A stretch of DNA of 64,000 nt, taken from contig NC_134478.1 of the NCBI RefSeq assembly GCF_964194025.1, positions 43,276,001-43,340,000 of the forward strand. The letters run 5' to 3'. The position numbers and the translations under genes are program-made. Source of the stretch: Convolutriloba macropyga. Taxonomy: Eukaryota. Below, one piece after another: positions 1 through 11,333 of the stretch; position 1 is the stretch's first letter, and each line of letters starts with the position of its first letter. Below the pieces are notes generated by a model. It was not told the DNA's origin and made no database searches. It worked only from the letters and a program-made list of their open reading frames with translations.

Positions 1-13
1 TGCGTTTTGACAT

Positions 14-23
14 TGATTGACAG
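14..23 (+). promoter_or_regulatory. PBX-MEIS/PREP composite site TGATTGACAG
   Basis: Exact match to the canonical TALE heterodimer decamer. Confidence 0.35.
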
Positions 24-864
24 ATCATGTAATATATTGCTTTTGTTACTAAACTGTGACTACTGTGCTCAATTGTATAAACATGCTGGATCTATACCGG
101 TGGTTTTTGGCAAGCAGTCCAACTCGAAACAACAAAAGTAACTGGATTCGTGGTCGGGGTCTGGGGAGGGGAATAGACCAGCCAATGCTTGTGGAAACCC
201 TCCCTTCATTTTCGTAACGATTCTATTCTCGGCGGGAGGGTAACAGCGGTTGAATGACTAACAGACATAACAGACATTGGTAGACAGTTGAGAGAAGGTT
301 TGAATTAGTGCACGTTGCATACTGGGATTGATTAAATTGGCTCAAGTGACAGCTGGCTGTAACTTTTTGTCAGCAGTCGCTTAAATTTGTTGATTAGATT
401 TGCTAAAATTTACCTGATCAATCTAGGCTGCAAAATTTTAAAGACGTCAGCTTTAGGCTCATAAAATGTGTTTACAATTTAAAGCTGATCAGTTAACAGT
501 ATCTAGCAACGGGAGCGCGTCTTATGAATTGTAGCTATAGGATTTTCTTTTCGTTTAAAATATTCTTGAAAAGGGAAGGTTCCAAAAATGGCAAAAAACA
601 AAGGTGGAAGATGATTGGAAAAAAGACATGCAGTAGATCAAGTGATCTGTCTAATATATATTCAGTGGAAACCGAATATTAGTTCTTTTTGTAGCGCGTT
701 TTGCTGATGTTCTTATATGTGCGTTGACGTTAACATTTTTAGGGTCTTTCATTTTTTGCGGCCAGAGGTAGGTGCTCCTTTTTCTCTAGTAGTCGAAGAA
801 GCAAAAGAGGCTCTTGTATCAACTGAGGAATGTTTCGGGGCGGTCATGCTATGTTTCGGGGAGT

Positions 865-1005
865 GTTATCTTGTAAGAGTCTTGTGGAGATGTTTGGTTT
901 ATCTTTTAAAACTCTTGCATTTTTGGGAAGTTATCTTGCAAGATGATGCATAGTTTTGCTGGATTCTTGCAAGATCTTGCTAGACAACCATCGTTCGAAT
1001 AGGGT
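865..1005. repeat. TCTTGCAAGA palindrome-rich MITE-like remnant
   Basis: Several tcttgcaaga/tcttg variants clustered, ending cgaatagggta. Confidence 0.35.
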
Positions 1006-2409
1006 ATGTATGCATTTCATTATTATAATTGTTCGGGGTAACAATTGAATTGAGAGATAAAAGTACCTCTGTGTTTTTAGAATTGAATTAAATACAATTT
1101 AGCAAGTCAAATTAAAGTAGTACCTAGGGTTTTTTGTCGACTTTGATTTGATTAATATTTTTAATTTTCAAATTCTGTTGAAACACTTTATTAGCATCAG
1201 GTTTATCCCTTTGCAGGAAACCCGCATGGGACTATCAGTGACAAATCTGTTACGATATATGGCACTATCAGTGGTATTAATTATTAGGTCTTTTTGTGCA
1301 TTTTTTGTTCAATTAGATAATTTGCATCATTTTTCTGGTTGATTTGCTTTTAATTTTAATTCCCATAACTAAAACATTTGTGAAGCTGAAATTAACTTTG
1401 CTTGCTAATTGAAAGTAGTATGCTATTGAAAGTGAAGTTTAAGAAGTTTAAGCTATTGAAATAAGAATGTATTTACACTGCTCAGAATATAAAATTGTGA
1501 TTCCCATTGACTACAGAGCATTTGTTGCTTCTGATGGTAAATATTTTTTGTTTATTTAAGCTTTTTTTTTAAAAGAACTTTATTAATTGGTAAGTCTACT
1601 GATAAATAATTCAACTAAAATATCATTAGACACGTCTTGATTTTAAGCTTGTGATTGATAAAGAACATATGATGTGCTGAACTGAGCTATTTGAAGAGCT
1701 TAGTGAACATTGATGTCAAAATTTTAACAATGAGCAAATATATCTGGCGTCAAAACGTAAGAAGCCATTTGTTTTTATTGACACTTGGAACAACTTATCT
1801 TTTGAATCCAATTTCTTCAGCAATTTGACAGTTTGATTATATAGAGAAAGGCGCTGGATCTGGGATGCAATTGGACTAATTACGGGTCATTTTTCAATTC
1901 ATAATCCTTGGTTTAATTGTTTTTTTTAGGAACTAATATTTTGTGTTATTTGTTTCATTGACGTGATTCATTAACCTACCTGAACGGAAAAATTGAACTT
2001 GTTTATGACAGAGTTATTATTTTGCTGGAAATGGAGTTTTGCTGTAAACTTTTTAAAAGATAAATGGGACTTCGAAAAAATTATTGTTAGCTGTTGTTTT
2101 TTCTGAGAAAATTTGAAGTTGAATTAAATTATCATCTGGTCACTCTCAGATCAGATGCATTCTAGTCACAAAGTTCATCAAGTTTTTGCTTATGCGTTGG
2201 AACAGCTATTGCTGTCAGATGTTGAGTGGTTATTTGTTTTGTACTTTTTCTGGGGGCAGAAAAGCTTCGGAAGGTAGTTTTCGTGGTGAAATAACAATTT
2301 TCAACATGTTGCTTACTAGGATGCTTCCGTTTTCTGGCTCACGGACGTTTTATAAGTTGCTTGGTTTTATAAGTATTGCCAACAGCAACTATTGAAAACG
2401 GTGTTTCCT

Positions 2410-2660
2410 GTTTTACAATTCAAAGAATTTGAATTGGATTGGGGCGCTGTCTTTTACGACTCGAAGAGGAGTATTGGAGTGAATTTTGAAGCGGGAAATG
2501 AAACACGTAAAAAAATTTGGAGTGATTTTGTTGCTGAACAAAATGAAGAGTGGAGCGAAAAGAGTGGTTTTTTGTTCATGGCGGTGTTTTCTGGAGAGCG
2601 CAAAATTGAGGTGTGAAAAAAAGTTCTGTAAGCGAGCGAATTTTTTTGTTCACGTGCGGA
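2410..2660 (+). mobile_element. HINE-like family A, diverged 5' fragment
   Basis: Starts ttttacaattcaaagaatttg..ttggggcgctgtcttt as in the copies at 40314 and 44066(-). Confidence 0.6.
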
Positions 2661-3496
2661 ATTTAAGCAATTTTTTCCCTGAATTTTTTTTTGGTTAAGA
2701 GGTTTGGTTATGATTTGCTTTTAATTTTAAGCTGGGTTTGGTAGTGGTTTGAAGATTTCTGAAAATTTGTATGATTTTTGTGCTAATTCGGATGTTTTTC
2801 ATGTATTTTGCTGATTTTTGGGCTAAATTTTACGATTTTTTTTACTATTGTTCTGTTTTTCTGCCTCAAATGGGTATTGAAGATACCCCTATTACTTGAG
2901 CATTTTTTAGTTAACACGTGGTTAAAGTTTTGTGGATATGAAGCATTTTTTGTTGAGAAATATGACGAAAAATGTCGAAAATTGGAACTTTTCTTAATTT
3001 TTTGCAGTTTTTTGGTTTTTCTCTTCTTTAGACAAGTTTCTTAACCTATTATGACTTGTCTATTGTTTTGCGAGAATCTGGGTACCTTGTTGGCTGAAAA
3101 GGTTTTTTTTAGATTTGTGTGCTTTTGTAATATTAAAAAAATATAACTTTTTCCAGTTTTATAGTCAAAGTTGTTTGTAAGAGCTTATTTTTTCATGTTT
3201 TGGCTTCAAGTATTTTTAAAAAATCTCATGTGGTTTAAGTAGTCGCTAGTGGTATTGATGAAGTAATTGTGGCACAGATAGTTTTTTGGGTATCAATTTA
3301 TGACATAATTTGATCAGATTTTTTATCATTTTTGAATAGATTTGATTTTTTTTTTTACTTTTTTGTTTTATGGTTTTATTTCAAGATAATCGTAACTTAT
3401 TGAATGCACGTTTTGTCTAATGAGTAGTTGGATGGCATTTAATTGGATCTCCACTTCGAGTCGTTTCCGGAATTGTTCCGGCTATGTTTTTTCCTA

Positions 3497-3848
3497 AGAT
3501 CTTCACACATTTTCATGATTTTTGAAGTCGAATTGGAGTAGTGATTTTCGTCACTCCGAAACAGGAAGTGGAGCGAAAAAGCAAGTGGTTTTGCGGCGTG
3601 AATTTTTTTCCCTCTAAATTTAAAGTTGAGTGAGAAAAAGGTGTTTGAACAAAAATTCGCTCTAGTGGTTTTTTGTTCACATGCGGCAATTTCACTTTGA
3701 TTTTTACAGTTTTTTCGATTTTTTGGATCGGATTTTTTTTCTAAATGGTTTTCCCAATCCATTCATAGTCCGTTCTTGGTCTAGTTTTCTGTTTAGTCAA
3801 TGAATATTCTTTGAATTGTACGTCAGGTCTTGTCCTGCTATGTTTTTT
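3497..3848 (+). mobile_element. HINE-like family A, 5'-truncated copy
   Basis: Aligns with 40360-40710 and (reverse) 43507-44010; subterminal IR ttctttgaattgta 3807-3820 and hairpin cagg..cctg 3824-3837. Confidence 0.75.
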
Positions 3849-4415
3849 AATTTCGTAATTTTAATTTGGCGACTTTCTTATGAGCATGAATTTTGCAGTC
3901 ACTGTATGTGGAATGTGTGAGTAATGGGCCTCGCTTTAGATGTTGCAGATATGTACTATGGCAATACGATTGGGCCAGGTTTTTCTCGTCTTCTGAATCA
4001 GGTTGCTTGACATTTGTAGGGGTATTTTTTCTGTTATTCATTTGTGCCAAATGGCATATCGTGAAAACAAAAGGAACAAATTTGTGGTTTCGAAGAAAAT
4101 GTTTTGCAGAAATATAAATATTTTAAATCGATTCTTTCTGACAATCTGTTCAAAATAGATTATAATACATTTGTGTCCACTGTATAAAAGCGCCTTCTTC
4201 AGTCTATTATATCTGCCATTTTTTAGTCAATGAAAATCCGCTGTTATTTTTAAGAATTTAAGATACGGGCATGTTTTCATTGTTGCAGTTGGGGCTCCCT
4301 ATTTCTATTAATGGTCTTTTGTGACTTTTCTTTGAGTTTCTGAATATTCTAGTCAAGACAAACGTCTGTAATATGAAAATGATCATAATATGATTTTTGG
4401 TCGTTATTTTGACAC

Positions 4416-4425
4416 TGATTGACAG
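4416..4425 (+). promoter_or_regulatory. PBX-MEIS/PREP composite site TGATTGACAG
   Basis: Exact decamer ~1.5 kb upstream of the inferred TSS; near-match TGATTGACGT near 4934. Confidence 0.4.
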
Positions 4426-5251
4426 TAATGAAGTGGTTGCTGAGTGATTTTGGTGATAATTATCACAGTCTGAGGTCTTCGATGTGTCTTCACGCTGTCT
4501 TGTTATGTTCTCTGCTTTTCTCATACCAAGATAGACTTACATGCATTATTGTGTTCAGTGAATTCTGTGATTTGATTGGCGCAGAGTGAAGCGAAGCAAA
4601 ACTCGTTTCAGCGCTGTTTGTGATGAGCTGCGTAATTAATTAGTGATACCTACCTGAGCGAAATTGTATGTGCTTCGCTTAGCCGAAAGGCTAGAGTAGC
4701 ATAATTTTTTTCCTTTTTATTTTGTTTTCGATTTTCCGTATTATCTGCCAAGATCTGGTGTTTTTTTTGTCACAATCTGTTTAGTTTTTCCATTAAAAAA
4801 TCAAATTAATCCTTTCTTTCTTCGAAAATATGGGAACTGCAATTGAAGGCGCTGTAAAGTGCATCTTAACATCAAAATGATTGTTGAAACTTTTTCGGCT
4901 AATTATGAGTTAGTTTGACTGTGATTGCTGTATTGATTGACGTCTGAACAGTGTATTTGTGTATTATGCGTGTTGTGTGTGTTTAGGCGGAGAGCTGATA
5001 GTTTTAATTTGATAAATTGGTTAGAATTGATTTGGCTTCTAGTTTCGATTCGCTCTGGCGCTAGTTGAACTGCAGGGCTCAGGTAATTTACCTTCATTAA
5101 TTAATCTAATGCAGTGCATTAAGTCGAATGTCTATTTAGCTTCATTCTTATTCATCATTTTGCAGGACTTTACAATTCGCTCGTTCCATGAAATTGGCAC
5201 GTAATACAGATTTTCTATAATTTTTTGTATGCTTTGAAATATTTTAGAAAC

Positions 5252-5312
5252 GGGGGGGGGGGGGGGTGCAAAATTGCGTGGTGGTGGTGGTGGTGGGGGG
5301 GGGGGGGGGGGG
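5252..5312 (+). repeat. Poly-G/(GGT)n tract, G-quadruplex-prone
   Basis: G15, spacer, (GTG)n, G18. Confidence 0.85.
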
Positions 5313-5399
5313 CAATGAACGGGAAAGATCCAGATTTGCATACAATTGATCTCAAAAAATGCTAAACTCCCGAAAACTTTGCCGCGCCTTTTCACTTAC

Positions 5400-6000
5400 A
5401 TCGTACCTCAAGCGTAGGATAAGTTATGATTGATGACGGGTGTATGTGGTAACTTGTTTTATTGTTAAGCTCGGAAATGCTTTGTTTTTGACTACTGATA
5501 ACCAACCAACCATTTGTTCTTGGTTGCCATGAGTGTTATCGGCGGTTATCGGCTAATTAATTAATGTGGTTGTGAAATGGAGAGCCGAGTGATTATGGCT
5601 AATTTAGTTTTGGTTATCTAACCACAGACTGGAAGAGAGAAAGTTGGTATGGACCGGCTGGCATTTTGATAATAAATCATATCTCATTAATTATTAATTG
5701 GCATTCGAAACGACATCTATCTGTTCTACAGAACAAATTCGCCAATTGTACTTCTAACAGTCGTGTATGTGCAGTAAATACAATATGCGTGCATACATCA
5801 ACGTCTAATCAAAAAAGAGTGAGGCAAAAGAGAACTTTTTGACTTTTTTGTGGCTGAAACGAGCGTTATGAAAAGCGAAAATGAGTTTTGTTCTAACAAT
5901 AAATTTGTACCTTTTTTGTCATCGTGAACTGCAACTGTATGCATCAATACATTGACAGCCGAAGATTCGAACAAAAAAGCCACCAACGAATTAAGACTTA
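5400..6000 (+). promoter_or_regulatory. Putative fz5/8 proximal promoter region
   Basis: Immediately precedes the onset of ATG depletion; non-repetitive; TAATTAATTA-type homeodomain clusters near 5553 and 5686. Confidence 0.4.
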
Positions 6001-6398
6001 GCTGTTATTGATTATTATTTATAACTAATTTATAACTAGCAGAGGTATTAGCTGGTTAACTAGTTAGTAGTGCTGGTAGCAGCATAGTAGTAGAATTTGT
6101 GAAGAAAAAGAGAAGGTGGAGAAAGAACGTATTTTACAATTCTGTGCAAATATTAATTCATATCACTCACTTTCAGCTTAGTTTAATTTATAATCATAAA
6201 CTACAACTATTATTACTTAATAGTTTATTACTACCACTGAGGAGCAACAGAGAGAAAGAGAGAAAAGAGCACCGGCCAATTCTAAACTTGTCTCCAAATT
6301 GTCATAAATACCAAAATTTTGACAATTTCTCAAACTATTGATCAATTTTGAGGAAATTGTCAAATTTTTAGAAAGACAAGGAAAAATCGCTCATTTAA

Positions 6399-6512
6399 AT
6401 GTGTTACATTTTGCGTTTTGTTTCTAGGAATTGCATTATTAACACAAATTGCAAATCGTCTACTATAAAATTGATCACTTTCGAAAATCATTACCAGTAT
6501 TCTTACTTTTGA
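6399..6512 (+). other. uORF1 (37 aa, MCYILRFVSR...)
   Basis: First ATG in the depleted leader; weak context taaATGt; TGA at 6510-6512. Confidence 0.45.
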
Positions 6513-7292
6513 GTCTTGAAATTGGAGGTGTCTGGTTTATTCACGGTGTTTACATTTGTGTACATCTCTTGATTGCGATATTAATTGCCTTGTTTATTGT
6601 GGTACCTGCTGGCGGAGCGTCTTGAAATTAAGACAGCAGAGTTGTTGGAGCCATTAAGAGAAGCAGTTTTGAAAAGGGAGGAACATTTTTGGAAGCATTT
6701 TTGAGCAACTGATAGTCGCATCATCAATTCACGTTTTCTCAATTTCCCTGAGCCGCCATCTTGTCGACATTAATTGGAACTTCGACTACGTTTAGTCGAC
6801 TGAGATTTTTATAGTTGCCAATTATTGCTTCTGTGCGGAGACTATTTAAATTTCAAGCATCTCCGTAGCCCTCAGTTTTCCAACTGTTGAGTTAGTTACT
6901 ACTGTTCGAGACAGGAAGCGTTACGTGAACGAGTGAACGTAAATAAAAACAGACCGGGTTGTGGGGAAGAAAAACAACAAAATCCTTTCCCCGCCTTTTC
7001 TGCATCTTTTTACCGTTATCCACAAAATTACAGTTGCCTCAAATTTCCTTTGCCATCAGGTTTTCAAGCGTACCACGTTGCCAATAGCTATTGAGTTGAG
7101 AAGATACTACTTGAAAAAGTTGCCTGTGAACAGATAAATACTACACCCCTCCTTCTATTTTGTTCTTCCTTGTTTGTTACTATTGCGAAGACGCGCTTGT
7201 ATTATTACCCACAGATTGTTAACTAACCAGGGCTAGTTATTACGTGCACCGTTCATTATAATTCTCGGTTATTTGCTTCGCGTTTACTCTAA

Positions 7293-7334
7293 ATGCTGCT
7301 AGAATTGATGCTGATATATAGCTCCTATCGTTAA
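7293..7334 (+). other. uORF2 (MLLELMLIYSSYR; second in-frame ATG at 7308)
   Basis: Two in-frame ATGs, both with T at -3. Confidence 0.45.
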
Positions 7335-7698
7335 CCATACGTTCATCATTTTGCTGTTAAAATATCCCCGCGCGTTATACTTACTTCTGCTTTAGGGGGA
7401 GAGAAAGAGAAAGCTTTTCCATTTCAACTAGTGGTACTTCATTTTTCCCTCTCTGCCTCGATTCGCTTCTCTTAGCTGCTTTGTACTGAAGAGAGTTGCC
7501 CTCCTAGTCTTTGTAAAACAGCACAGCTTAACACACTGTGGTACTACTGCACAGAAAACAGCACAAAATTATCCTACTATTGCTGTCTTTTGAAAAATAT
7601 TCTCTATTTTGCCTCTATTTTGCATTTAGTGGGAAAATTTCAACATTTTCAGCAGCAGTAGCAGCCGAATACATTATCTTCGCACGCACTAGAGTTTT

Positions 7699-7786
7699 AT
7701 GCTATATGCTACTTACTTTTTGCATATATAACCTTTTCCAATTTTGTGGGGAAAACACAATTTTGAGTAAAAGTAGTGTTGTATAG
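7699..7786 (+). other. Overlapping uORF3 (7699-7731, 10 aa) and uORF4 (7706-7786, 26 aa)
   Basis: tttATGc and tatATGc, weak contexts, different frames. Confidence 0.4.
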
Positions 7787-8229
7787 CTCAATTTTGAATT
7801 TTGTGCTCATTATTTTTATTCCATCCTGCTTTGAGGGAAAATTTTAGAAAATAGAAAAATTTATTCCCAACTTATCTGTCGTGCTGACTCGCTCTGCCTT
7901 ACCTCTCTCCTGTTTACGTGTTTGCTTAGCCTATTGGGAGATTGTCCTATAGCATTCGAGTGCTTTCACCTTTCATTAATTCTCGCACTCTGATTGGCTG
8001 ATAAATTCGATTCAAATTCTCGCAGCGCCTATCAAAAATAGCCGAATAAATTGTATCTTTTAACATTGTAAATTTACACTGTGCGTTTATTTTACTACAC
8101 ACACTGTAAAAGAATTTTAACTTTTACTGGTTGAGAGAAATATCCTATCCTTTCTGTTTTTTAACAGAGCACACGCACACAGTAAAGATTTGGTTTGGCG
8201 TGGAATTATTGGTTGGGAAGCGGGAATAT

Positions 8230-8367
8230 ATGTGTAATATTTGTAATACTTTTCCTGCCTTTTCTATATATCCTCAGAGAAGAGAACAGGCTTGTAGAAA
8301 AGTAGGCGGCGATTGTTATTTCATTTTGAATTTTGCTCCGCCAGTTTTGCTTTGCTTCATATTATAG
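8230..8367 (+). other. uORF5 (45 aa, MCNICNTF...)
   Basis: tatATGt weak context; TAG stop ending 8367. Confidence 0.4.
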
Positions 8368-8442
8368 CAGCTACAGTAGCTAGCTAGTCACTGCTCTCTT
8401 AAATCGCCATAAATTGACGGCCCTTTTCCTCTATAATTCTAA

Positions 8443-8484
8443 ATGCCACTTATTTCTATCCCCACTACTACTACCACCAACTGA
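8443..8484 (+). other. uORF6 (MPLISIPTTTTTN)
   Basis: Last upstream ATG (taaATGc); followed by ~1.2 kb free of ATG up to the main start. Confidence 0.45.
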
Positions 8485-9671
8485 ACCTACACACACACTC
8501 GCAGAAACGCATAAACTACCAGCTAACAGGCATCATTGTTGGAACAACAACGACCTGTCCAAAAACGTTCCTTGTTTTCCTTGTTGGTAAACAAATTTAT
8601 TCATCCTGGTTGCAAGTATTGTTGAACTGCTATAATTACTTGACGAAATACCAAGAATATTTGTCACAAGAGAAAAGTCACCCGCGACTACTGTTCTTTA
8701 TTCAAACACTTTCTGTTGTTCTTACACTTCTCAAATATATTTGGTTACATTTACGAAATAAATTGACATCTTGGGAAAAAATTGATTGTTATTCGCACAT
8801 TGAATATTATTTCCGGTTTTTGTTGTGACACTTAGTGACAAAATTTGCGTTCACATTGATAACCAAATTTGTCGACAAATTTTATAGAATTTCGAGGATC
8901 AATTTTAATTCGGTTTGGCGGAAACGCAAAAATTTGTCACACATTTTGTGAAAGAATTGAAAAACGTCATATTACTCCATTACAATTGTTGAGTTATTTT
9001 ACTACCAGTTTGCTTCTGTTTAACCGATAACAAAACGTTCAGCAATTCGCGTTTAAAACAACTGACGCTTTAGTCAAAAGCTAATTTTCCTCTTTTGTTT
9101 AAATTTTCCGCCTTAGGACGGAGAAATTTACATTATTTCACTTCACTCTCACAGGGAACACAAATAATTACTATTGTTCGCTTTTGTGCTCAAGAATTTA
9201 ATTTGTGACAATTTTTCTAAAGCTCTAGAGTTCTAAAGCTAAAAAAATTGCGTGTGAGAGTTAACAAAACGGCGACTGACTTCCATCGACGGAAACTCAA
9301 AATTTGTTAGCAATATTGCAACCATTGGGTGAAGTATTGTGGAAATTGCTTCACTGTTTTGCCTGATATTTCTCCACTAATTACTGCTCGTTTTGCAAAA
9401 ATCCATATCGCTTTTTGTGAAGAGACTGAGAAAACAAATTCCGCCCCAAAAATTCAATACACATTTGGTCTATTTGCGTCAGTGATTTTACTTAGCTTAA
9501 TTCATTTGCTTAATTCGAGTTGTTTATCAATAGTTTAAGCAAAGAAAATATTGAAAAATTTACTTCCTTTTACAGTTGCTCATATTATACAAAACCAACT
9601 TTGAAAAATCAATTTTTATCTAATTTGTCTGCCGGAAAGTCTGAAAGATTGAAGGAAAATTTAATCACAAA

Positions 9672-11333
9672 ATGTTGACTCGAAAACCAAACTCAAACGT
9701 ATTTTCATTTCTAGTTTCTCTGTTGTTATTTATAACTTCAGTTCGAGCGATTAAAACGAGCGGACAGTGCCAAGAAATCACTGTTCCTATGTGCAAACAA
9801 ATCGGATACAATGCCACTACATTTCCAAACGAGTTGGATCACAACACCCAAAATGAAGCGGGAATGGAAATTCACCAATTTTGGCCACTCGTGGAAATCG
9901 GGTGCTCAGACCAACTCAGATTTTTCCTCTGCTCGAAGTACGTTCCCATTTGCCTGCCGAACTTTTCCAAGACTTTACAGGCTTGTAAGAAAGTTTGTGA
10001 AGTTGCGAGGGCGGGATGCGAACCGGTGATGCAACATTATGGCTTCGAATGGCCGGAACGATTCGATTGTGATAAGCTGATTACGAAAGAAGAGTCGCTG
10101 CTGGAAGAAAACAGACAAAAGAACTTGATGTGCATGCAGGATGACCACCTGGATGACTCAGATCCGGTTCTTCCTCCAACCAAGATCGAAGGGAGCAAAC
10201 CTCCTGGAAACGAAATTCCAGAACCAATTGGCCCAAAACTCGGTCCAGAGTGCTGCTCGTGCAATTCGCCATTTAAGAAATTGACGGGGACCTCGCCCTA
10301 CTACAAGCTCAATGTCACAACTGGATTGATGTCAAACTGTGCGATGTCTTGCAAAAGTCCTCACTTCGATGACAACGAGAGGAAGTTCACCCCAATCTGG
10401 TTGGGAATCTGGTCTTGCCTATGTTTTGTATCAACATCCGTAATGGTGCTCACTTTCCTAATCGATATGTCCAGATTCAAGTACCCAGAACGTCCCATCA
10501 TTTTCCTGTCCGGCTGCTACATGTTCGTTGCAATTGGTTTCATGATCAGACTAGTCGCTGGACACGAAGCGGTTGCATGCAACGATGAAATAATTCGATA
10601 CGATATTAGTGGTCGCCCGCCGTTGTGCATAACCGTGTTCATTCTCACATATTTCTTCAGTATGGCCAGCTCAATTTGGTGGGTAATTCTCTCCCTGACC
10701 TGGTTCCTAGCGGCTGGACTCAAATGGGGCAGCGAGGCAATTGCAAACTACTCATGGTGGTTTCATCTCGTAGGATGGGTTATACCGACAATTCAAACAG
10801 CAGTCGTTATTTTCACCAACAGCGTTGATGGAGATCCGGTATCTGGGATCTGCTATGTTGGCAACCAGAGCATTGAAAACCTTCGATTCTACGTCCTGGG
10901 ACCCCTGATCGTCTATCTTTTCACGGGCACTATGTTTCTGTTGGCTGGCTTCGTATCATTGTTCAAAATCCGACATGTTATCAAGCGTGGAGGAACAAAC
11001 ACGGAGAAATTAGAGAAGTTAATGATGAGAATTGGTGTGTTTTCGTTTTTCTACACAGTTCCCGCAGCTGTAGTCATTGCATGTTACTTCTACGAGCACA
11101 GATATAGAGTAGACTGGGAAAAAAGGGTAACGTGTCCGTGCGTTGGCAGGAATTACCCCACGCCAGAGTACTTTGTCTTTGTTTGCAAATACTTTATGCT
11201 GTTAGTGGTTGGAATCACATCAGGTTTCTGGATCTGGACGAACAAGACCATCAACTCCTGGCTGCAATTCGGATCTAAGATCTTGGGAGGTCGAGGAAAC
11301 AATGTCCCGAAGGTTCCCATGACCCATGTCTAA
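9672..11333 (+). CDS. fzd5/8: Frizzled-5/8 Wnt receptor (uninterrupted CDS, 553 aa)
   Basis: Signal peptide; cysteine-rich domain CQEITVPMCKQIGYN..EAGMEIHQFWPLVEIGCS..FFLCS..C..GFEWP of Fz5/8 type; 7 TM core (FKYPERPIIFLSGCY, YFFSMASSIWWVILSLTWFLAAG, GDPVSGICYVGN, LEKLMMRIGVFS); Dishevelled-binding KTxxxW motif (KTINSW); PDZ-type C-terminus -MTHV, like FZD5 -SHV; start in cacaaaATG context. Confidence 0.97.
   Translation: MLTRKPNSNVFSFLVSLLLFITSVRAIKTSGQCQEITVPMCKQIGYNATTFPNELDHNTQNEAGMEIHQFWPLVEIGCSDQLRFFLCSKYVPICLPNFSKTLQACKKVCEVARAGCEPVMQHYGFEWPERFDCDKLITKEESLLEENRQKNLMCMQDDHLDDSDPVLPPTKIEGSKPPGNEIPEPIGPKLGPECCSCNSPFKKLTGTSPYYKLNVTTGLMSNCAMSCKSPHFDDNERKFTPIWLGIWSCLCFVSTSVMVLTFLIDMSRFKYPERPIIFLSGCYMFVAIGFMIRLVAGHEAVACNDEIIRYDISGRPPLCITVFILTYFFSMASSIWWVILSLTWFLAAGLKWGSEAIANYSWWFHLVGWVIPTIQTAVVIFTNSVDGDPVSGICYVGNQSIENLRFYVLGPLIVYLFTGTMFLLAGFVSLFKIRHVIKRGGTNTEKLEKLMMRIGVFSFFYTVPAAVVIACYFYEHRYRVDWEKRVTCPCVGRNYPTPEYFVFVCKYFMLLVVGITSGFWIWTNKTINSWLQFGSKILGGRGNNVPKVPMTHV

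Follow-up and report, generated by a model that had tools for sequence, protein, structure and literature searches.

The seven ATG triplets that remain in the 3.7 kb upstream of the Frizzled 5/8 (Fz5/8) coding sequence (CDS) of the acoel Convolutriloba macropyga all share one weak start context, with T at position -3 and a pyrimidine at position +4 (T-3/Y+4). In our opinion, these upstream ATGs (uATGs) are best understood as the survivors of a filter, a reading to which we assign a probability of about 65%. Positions 5940–9671 of the window (the whole 64,000-nucleotide stretch of DNA analyzed here) would, according to this reading, constitute a leader that is scanned by ribosomes and in which selection against AUGs is graded by context, while the uATGs themselves would not be maintained as regulators. 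The context bias turns a bare count of ATGs into a mechanism-specific signature: if selection acts through start-codon recognition, scanning ribosomes must have access to the 3.7-kb stretch.

The identity of the gene downstream of the leader is well defined. The encoded protein contains the Pfam Fz cysteine-rich domain (PF01392) and the 7-TM Frizzled domain (PF01534), and its C-terminus reads T-H-V. Among named proteins, it best matches frizzled-5, frizzled-8, and Fz5/8 from many bilaterians, with 53–56% identity. The coordinates of the CDS and of all leader features are collected in Table 1.

Table 1 Features of the Fz5/8 locus, in coordinates of the window
Feature	Position	Strand	Evidence
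ATG desert, putative unspliced 5' leader of the Fz5/8 mRNA	5940–9671	+	ATG count, trinucleotide O/E, change-point
uORF 1, taaATGt, 37 codons	6399–6512	+	ATG listing, ORF translation
uORF 2, taaATGc, 13 codons; nested in-frame uATG at 7308 (ttgATGc, 8 codons)	7293–7334	+	
uORF 3, tttATGc, 10 codons; copy 1 of a 7-nt tandem duplication, TATGCTA	7699–7731	+	
uORF 4, tatATGc, 26 codons; copy 2 of the 7-nt duplication	7706–7786	+	
uORF 5, tatATGt, 45 codons; ATG polymorphic, without counterpart in the closest relative	8230–8367	+	
uORF 6, taaATGc, 13 codons; within a block alignable to the closest relative, where the triplet is ATT	8443–8484	+	
Conserved 41-nt leader element with GGCGG ... CCGCC ends, in all three species	8302–8342	+	
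Second conserved leader element, 27 nt, in all three species	8396–8422	+	
Frizzled 5/8 CDS, single exon, 553 aa, start aaaATGt	9672–11333	+	ORF, Pfam, orthologue identity

The first line of evidence is the depletion of ATG itself. On the plus strand, positions 5940–9671 contain 7 ATGs against about 66 expected from the background of the rest of the window, an approximately 10-fold depletion, while the count of its reverse complement, CAT, in the same interval is normal (59). When all 64 trinucleotides are ranked by their observed-to-expected ratio (O/E) in this interval, ATG is the most depleted at 0.13, and the next one stands at 0.52. The preceding positions 5000–5939 carry 20 ATGs on the plus strand, and the desert holds the window's three longest gaps without an ATG. 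The depletion is uniform over the entire 3.7 kb and is found on both sides of each uATG. The stretch is present as a single copy in the 1.18-Gb genome and is, for this reason, not a transposon leader; no dispersed repeat tying the uATG sites together was found in it.

The 3' limit of the desert is the main ATG at 9672 exactly, and a simple change-point estimate places the 5' limit between 5940 and about 6127, the last ATG at normal density being that at 5939. The sequence TTGACAG ends at 5957, shortly past this ATG. The 5' limit of the leader may be either a transcription start site (TSS) or a spliced leader (SL) acceptor, and this true start most likely lies within 5940–6127. Compared with 22 other genes of the genome, in which the nearest upstream ATG is found at a median distance of 83 nt and a maximum of 450 nt from the putative start, the Fz5/8 leader is exceptional in its length.

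A full listing of plus-strand ATGs from 5000 to 9800 bears out the description given in the initial annotation: seven uATGs, all with T at -3 (7/7) and C or T at +4 (7/7), and a main start with A at -3. The same holds for the six uORFs of 10 to 45 codons that they open, none of which overlaps the CDS; the last of them ends 1187 nt upstream of it, in agreement with the distance of at least ~1.19 kb that had been claimed. It should be noted that the lack of ATGs in the last ~1.2 kb of the leader is only marginally unusual (P 0.06).

The initial annotation had also held that the weak context is evidence separate from the ATG count, and the bias proved to be real against each of three nulls. T-3/Y+4 makes up 16% of the 1041 other plus-strand ATGs of the window and 15.5% of the 58 ATGs on the minus strand of 5940–9671; among the 618 triplets of that interval that differ from ATG by one substitution, its share is 19%. 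Against these frequencies, 7 uATGs out of 7 correspond to P of about 2e-6 to 8e-6. The exact pattern was defined post hoc, and for this reason a weak class fixed beforehand from Kozak's rule (pyrimidine at -3, any base but G at +4; null frequency 0.40–0.42) was tested as well. All seven uATGs belong to this class (P ~0.002). Some of the uATGs share sequence: those at 7699 and 7706 lie in the 7-nt tandem duplication, and those at 7293 and 7308 both read ATGCTG, so that perhaps only about five independent events are represented. Five such events at a null frequency of ~0.18 still give P ~2e-4 by hand arithmetic.

The third line of evidence is the order in which contexts have been purged. Pooled O/E is 0.02 for ATGs with a purine at -3 and 0.05 for those with a pyrimidine at -3 and G at +4; it rises to 0.15 for T-3/A+4 and 0.17 for C at -3, and reaches 0.39 for T-3/Y+4. 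Taken alone, the window has 7 T-3/Y+4 ATGs where 10.8 are expected (P 0.15) and none in the remaining classes, for which ~55 are expected together. The ranking of the classes agrees with that of context strength in reporter experiments, as expected if purifying selection is proportional to the efficiency of initiation; the contrast between purine and pyrimidine at -3 is the strongest effect measured there (PMC4299517). T-3/Y+4 AUGs are nevertheless not fully invisible, given that in the relatives described below this class is depleted too, with 2 observed against 8–10 expected.

Whether the species itself disfavors T at -3 at genuine starts was assessed with 23 putative main starts, namely those of 22 genes of the Ras, Arf, and E2 families together with Fz5/8. 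The genes were taken from whole-genome matches beginning at the first positions of the Pfam profiles, and a start was kept if it was the only in-frame ATG or if the N-terminal sequence backed it, as with the MG start of Arf. A purine occupies -3 in 14 of the 23 and T in 5 of the 23. The weak class accounts for 4/23 against the null of 0.41 (P 0.015), T-3/Y+4 for 0/23, and the difference from the uATGs (4/23 versus 7/7) is significant by Fisher's test (P 1.6e-4), with the qualification that the sample is small and heuristic and that G at +4 is confounded by the second amino acid. Thus, weak contexts are avoided at main starts in this heuristic sample, a result with which the scanning proposed in the initial annotation is compatible.

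Three closer Fz5/8 orthologue loci, with 83%, 75%, and 68% protein identity, were available for comparison. In the closest of them (L002, 83%; a genomic contig), ATG density is normal farther away than ~3.0 kb from the CDS, and the ~3.0 kb directly upstream of the CDS contain only 6 ATGs. Another locus (L001) is a Logan contig of 6562 nt, of which the first 3765 nt precede the CDS; this upstream part contains 8 ATGs, with ~50 expected, alongside 72 CATs. The remaining one (L003) offers just 497 nt of upstream sequence, with 2 ATGs. No comparable desert was found in the distant Fz5/8 orthologues L094–L098 (51–53% identity). A metagenome scan with an alignment of the four proteins returned only distant matches to the Fz cysteine-rich domain, at 35–58% identity, and no additional acoel leaders.

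The context bias recurs in these relatives in part. For this comparison the hypothesis had been set beforehand. Among the 16 uATGs of the three loci, 13 have a pyrimidine at -3 (P 0.004–0.018), 9 have T at -3 (P 0.02–0.04), and 12 fall into the weak class (P 0.002–0.016). Enrichment of pyrimidines at +4 was not seen among the same 16 (9/16; P 0.16–0.69). The -3 bias is thus a lineage-wide property; the +4 bias is specific to the window and partly a product of small duplications. At -3, the main starts of the four orthologues carry A, G, A, and A.

The positions of the uATGs, which the initial annotation had proposed to compare among related species, are not conserved; what recurs is the -3 pyrimidine and not the pyrimidine at +4. 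The leaders align between species only in short islands. The ATG at 8443 falls into such an alignable block and is replaced in the closest relative as given in Table 1. The peptides and lengths of the uORFs of the window and of the three relatives are unrelated. The distance from the end of the last uORF to the CDS, which is 1187 nt in the window, is 500 nt in L002 and 80 nt in L001.

Variation among individuals of the species extends this picture. The sequence of other individuals was obtained as genomic contigs from four runs, with even depth across the upstream flank; these contigs yielded polymorphisms and no transcript end, joint, or SL. In two of these individuals (labelled X3 and X4, elsewhere S2 and S3), a G>T change at 8232 converts the triplet at 8230 into ATT, and both also have 2 nt inserted after 7296, which shifts the frame of uORF 2. 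None of the 23 SNPs and 4 indels recorded creates an ATG, yet only 1.3 such changes are expected, as 5.5% of substitutions would do so.

These observations can be accommodated in a simple mechanism. The interval 5940–9671 would be one continuous 5' leader of ~3.6–3.7 kb that is retained in the mature Fz5/8 mRNA; it is the ATG signature that suggests a transcript of this kind, with its 5' end near the edge of the desert and its leader free of introns, forming one exon. The 43S complexes would enter at the 5' end of the leader and scan. Any AUG capturing a 43S complex would lower the output of the receptor or lead to decay of the message, and would be removed by purifying selection. The strength of this selection would scale with how well the AUG is recognized, so that AUGs with a purine at -3 or G at +4 would be essentially eliminated, and T-3/Y+4 AUGs would be mostly bypassed by leaky scanning, remain nearly neutral, and drift in and out of the leader. 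The seven uATGs would accordingly be filter survivors: young, unconserved, partly polymorphic, and not individually maintained. Ribosomes that do initiate on them would translate 10 to 45 codons and may then resume scanning. By analogy with the general scanning model (Kozak) and the -3 effect reported in PMC4299517, both leaky scanning and reinitiation are plausible here. The proposal of the initial annotation that ribosomes scan the whole leader is supported by evidence of an evolutionary kind, namely, the context bias, the strand-specific and graded depletion, and its recurrence in relatives.

The explanation that comes closest to the preferred one, although we consider it unlikely, is that individual uORFs turn over while stabilizing selection acts on the total load of weak uORFs, keeping Fz5/8 output damped or responsive to stress. 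The similar numbers of uATGs in the three long leaders (7, 8, and 6) would fit such a load, but leaders of similar length would reach equal numbers under mutation-selection balance as well. Further support could be sought in the mini-uORF that, in each of two relatives, starts 5–7 nt before the conserved 41-nt element, and in the compensated birth-death turnover of uORFs described for Drosophila in PMC13019311. Against it, the tolerated class numbers 7 with 10.8 expected, so that there is no excess to explain, and one of the uATGs is still segregating.

It is distinctly improbable that the uATGs lie outside the scanned mRNA altogether, either before a TSS or SL acceptor or inside short leader introns, and that their pattern is a coincidence or an effect of duplication. 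One reason to consider this is trans-splicing: in Symsagittifera roscoffensis, ~30% of genes are SL trans-spliced, and the published 32-nt SL of that species (PMC9911081) has 1748 matches in the genome studied here at no more than one mismatch, with 0 for the reversed control. The published SL is absent from all loci retrieved, including the 5' end of L001. An outron discarded by trans-splicing would escape an ATG purge, and the desert therefore implies that the mature Fz5/8 mRNA would keep the whole 3.7 kb. The uniform depletion of ATG around every uATG likewise leaves no room for sizeable introns. The shared origin of 7699 and 7706 in one 7-nt duplication and the common ATGCTG of 7293 and 7308 also speak for this explanation, yet it predicts no context bias, in conflict with P ~1e-5 in the window and with the recurrence of the -3 bias in relatives; the estimate from five independent events, given above, stands against it as well.

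The initial annotation had gone further and interpreted the uORFs as a tuned rheostat on Fz5/8 dose. In its strict form, this interpretation holds that these six uORFs are a maintained device that sets receptor dose by leaky scanning and by reinitiation across at least 1.19 kb, and we regard it as hard to sustain. In its favor stand the uniformly weakest context and the short uORFs distant from the CDS, which would favor reinitiation under the general scanning model. However, relatives share neither the positions nor the peptides, lengths, or distances to the CDS, and two other individuals lack the ATG at 8230 and have an indel that shifts the frame of uORF 2. The long tail that would permit reinitiation is statistically marginal, and in relatives the last uORFs end 80 and 500 nt from the CDS. 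Moreover, the T-3/Y+4 class stands at about its neutral expectation, as the residue of a filter should, and this is not what tuning predicts. The rheostat claim is consequently not supported. Composition alone is the least credible explanation of all: the T-rich, G-poor plus strand of the leader (35% T, 17% G) could make T-3/Y+4 the commonest context, but same-strand nulls from the same stretch (triplets one substitution from ATG, ATH, BTG, and AVG) yield the pattern in only 10–22% of cases, and the minus-strand ATGs stay at the frequency given above.

The context bias does not demonstrate uORF regulation of Frizzled dosage. It does provide, from a single long leader, a cheap, annotation-free read-out of the start-context hierarchy of a non-model species. 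Since about one third of the mRNAs of this animal are trans-spliced, and since Fz5/8 orthologues in other animals have leaders of ordinary size, a giant scanned leader would not have been expected here.

The conserved blocks and the length of the leader deserve, in our opinion, at least as much attention as the uATGs. Consensus folding of the 41-nt element gives 11 pairs, and no compensatory changes or covariation were found in it. An Rfam search of the leader returned nothing near any gathering score, and sliding-window folding revealed no structural difference between the leader (mean z -0.30) and its flanks (-0.31). We tentatively suggest, as a possibility that falls well short of the reading favored here, that in this acoel lineage the leader of Fz5/8 is among the longest known in any animal to be strictly scanned (3–3.7 kb, kept clear of recognizable AUGs across at least three species). 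Its residual uATGs would then serve as a natural read-out of the start-selection rule of acoels, in which a T-3/Y+4 AUG is effectively invisible, and the two conserved blocks, which adjoin mini-uORFs in two species, would be the real elements of translational or localization control.

Several known systems resemble the Fz5/8 leader in part. Delayed reinitiation of the GCN4/ATF4 type also involves several short uORFs on a long leader, and how far away the next AUG lies governs reinitiation there. In GCN4 and ATF4, uORF positions are conserved, and the inhibitory uORF of ATF4 overlaps the CDS. Unlike these, the Fz5/8 leader has no conserved positions, fixed spacing, or overlap with the CDS, and one of its uATGs is polymorphic; a device of this type is ruled out by the unconserved uAUG positions and by the spacing of the last uORF (1187, 500, and 80 nt). 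A uORF encoding a conserved peptide (CPuORF) is ruled out by the unrelated peptides of the window and of L001, L002, and L003.

Long leaders of the IRES type (Antp and Ubx; the Hox a-cluster) share with the present one a kilobase scale and a position on a patterning gene, and they tolerate many uAUGs, since the ribosome enters internally. In the Fz5/8 leader, by contrast, AUGs are purged and the purge is graded by context, which is the signature of linear scanning. An IRES-bearing leader was rejected on these grounds, together with the lack of an Rfam match, folding like that of the flanks, and a 41-nt block without covariation. The ATG deserts of human core promoters, which surround the TSS over ~1 kb and are not known to be strongly strand-specific, are likewise local depletions of ATG near gene starts. 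The Fz5/8 desert differs from them in being one-stranded and 3.7 kb long, in ending at the main ATG, and in being graded by context.

The closest parallel is genome-wide selection on uAUGs. Depletion of uAUGs has been documented across 478 eukaryotes (Zhang et al. 2021; PMC7889888); in every species uORFs have lower Kozak scores than CDS starts, and invertebrate uORFs score below neutral AUGs of the 3'UTR as well (PMC7889888). The Fz5/8 leader shares with that pattern the depletion, the contexts poorer than those of main and neutral AUGs, and uORF peptides that are mostly unconserved. It differs in that it represents one gene and not a genome average, in that its leader measures 3–3.7 kb, and in that the purge is near-total in all contexts but one. 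Thus, the leader of Fz5/8 can be viewed as a clean single-gene instance of the published uAUG rule, realized on an unusually long leader.

Two short blocks in the inferred unspliced 5′ leader of the Fz5/8 gene are better candidates than the uORFs for control elements, whether these act at the RNA or the DNA level. Both are near-identical in the window and at the Fz5/8 loci of two related species (L001 and L002), and outside them the leader is unalignable among the three. The ends of the 41-nt block read GGCGG and CCGCC; comparison of the three species revealed no compensatory changes within it, and it has no match in Rfam.

Positions of leader-associated features in the window and at two related Fz5/8 loci
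Feature	Window	L001	L002	Remark
Block 1, 41 nt	8302-8342	2315-2355	8848-8888	Near-identical in three species
Block 2, 27 nt	8396-8422	from 2363	from 8947	Near-identical in three species
Mini-uORF		2308-2325		5 codons, weak context
Mini-uORF			8843-8851	2 codons, weak context
Palindrome, 57 nt	6313-6369			Near-perfect, arms 87% complementary
66-nt block	5673-5738		7008-7072	76% identity

In both relatives a mini-uORF begins 5–7 nt 5′ of the 41-nt block, at slightly different offsets, and the matching site in the window holds TAG. The sole window uORF that reads through this block is the polymorphic one at 8230.

In other individuals the leader differs from the reference at 6.2 sites per kb. Over the initial 1.2 kb of the CDS (9672-10900) the figure is 9.8 per kb, from 12 sites that include a change within codon 2, 9676 T>C. 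The leader is thus no more variable than coding sequence, even though it fails to align between species.

Upstream ATG density is ordinary at three more distant Fz5/8 orthologue loci of 51–53% identity (L094, L095 and L097), at one of which, for example, 28 ATGs lie within 2832 nt. It would seem from this that the giant leader purged of ATG is confined to the clade comprising the window species and the two relatives.

The palindrome of the early leader lies directly 5′ of the first uATG; a whole-genome search with the leader gave a single second match, and this was the palindrome. The 66-nt block is located, in both species, at the 5′ edge of the ATG desert or just beyond it, a position from which it could be a promoter-proximal element or could mark the start of the leader.

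After ATG, the trinucleotide most depleted in the leader (5940-9671) is GAT, with 27 occurrences against 63 expected from background and 52 under a dinucleotide model. ATT, TTG and GAG are enriched, and overlap with ATG explains this pattern only partly. On a larger scale, window positions 1-6000 and 14000-42000 are long stretches in which the + strand is G- and T-rich, its GC skew being strongly positive and its AT skew negative, and the sign of the skew flips near 42–44 kb.

The 32-nt spliced leader published for Symsagittifera roscoffensis, allowing at most one mismatch, has 1748 matches in the assembly containing the window (572 forward and 1176 reverse), far above what is expected for spliced leader RNA genes alone.
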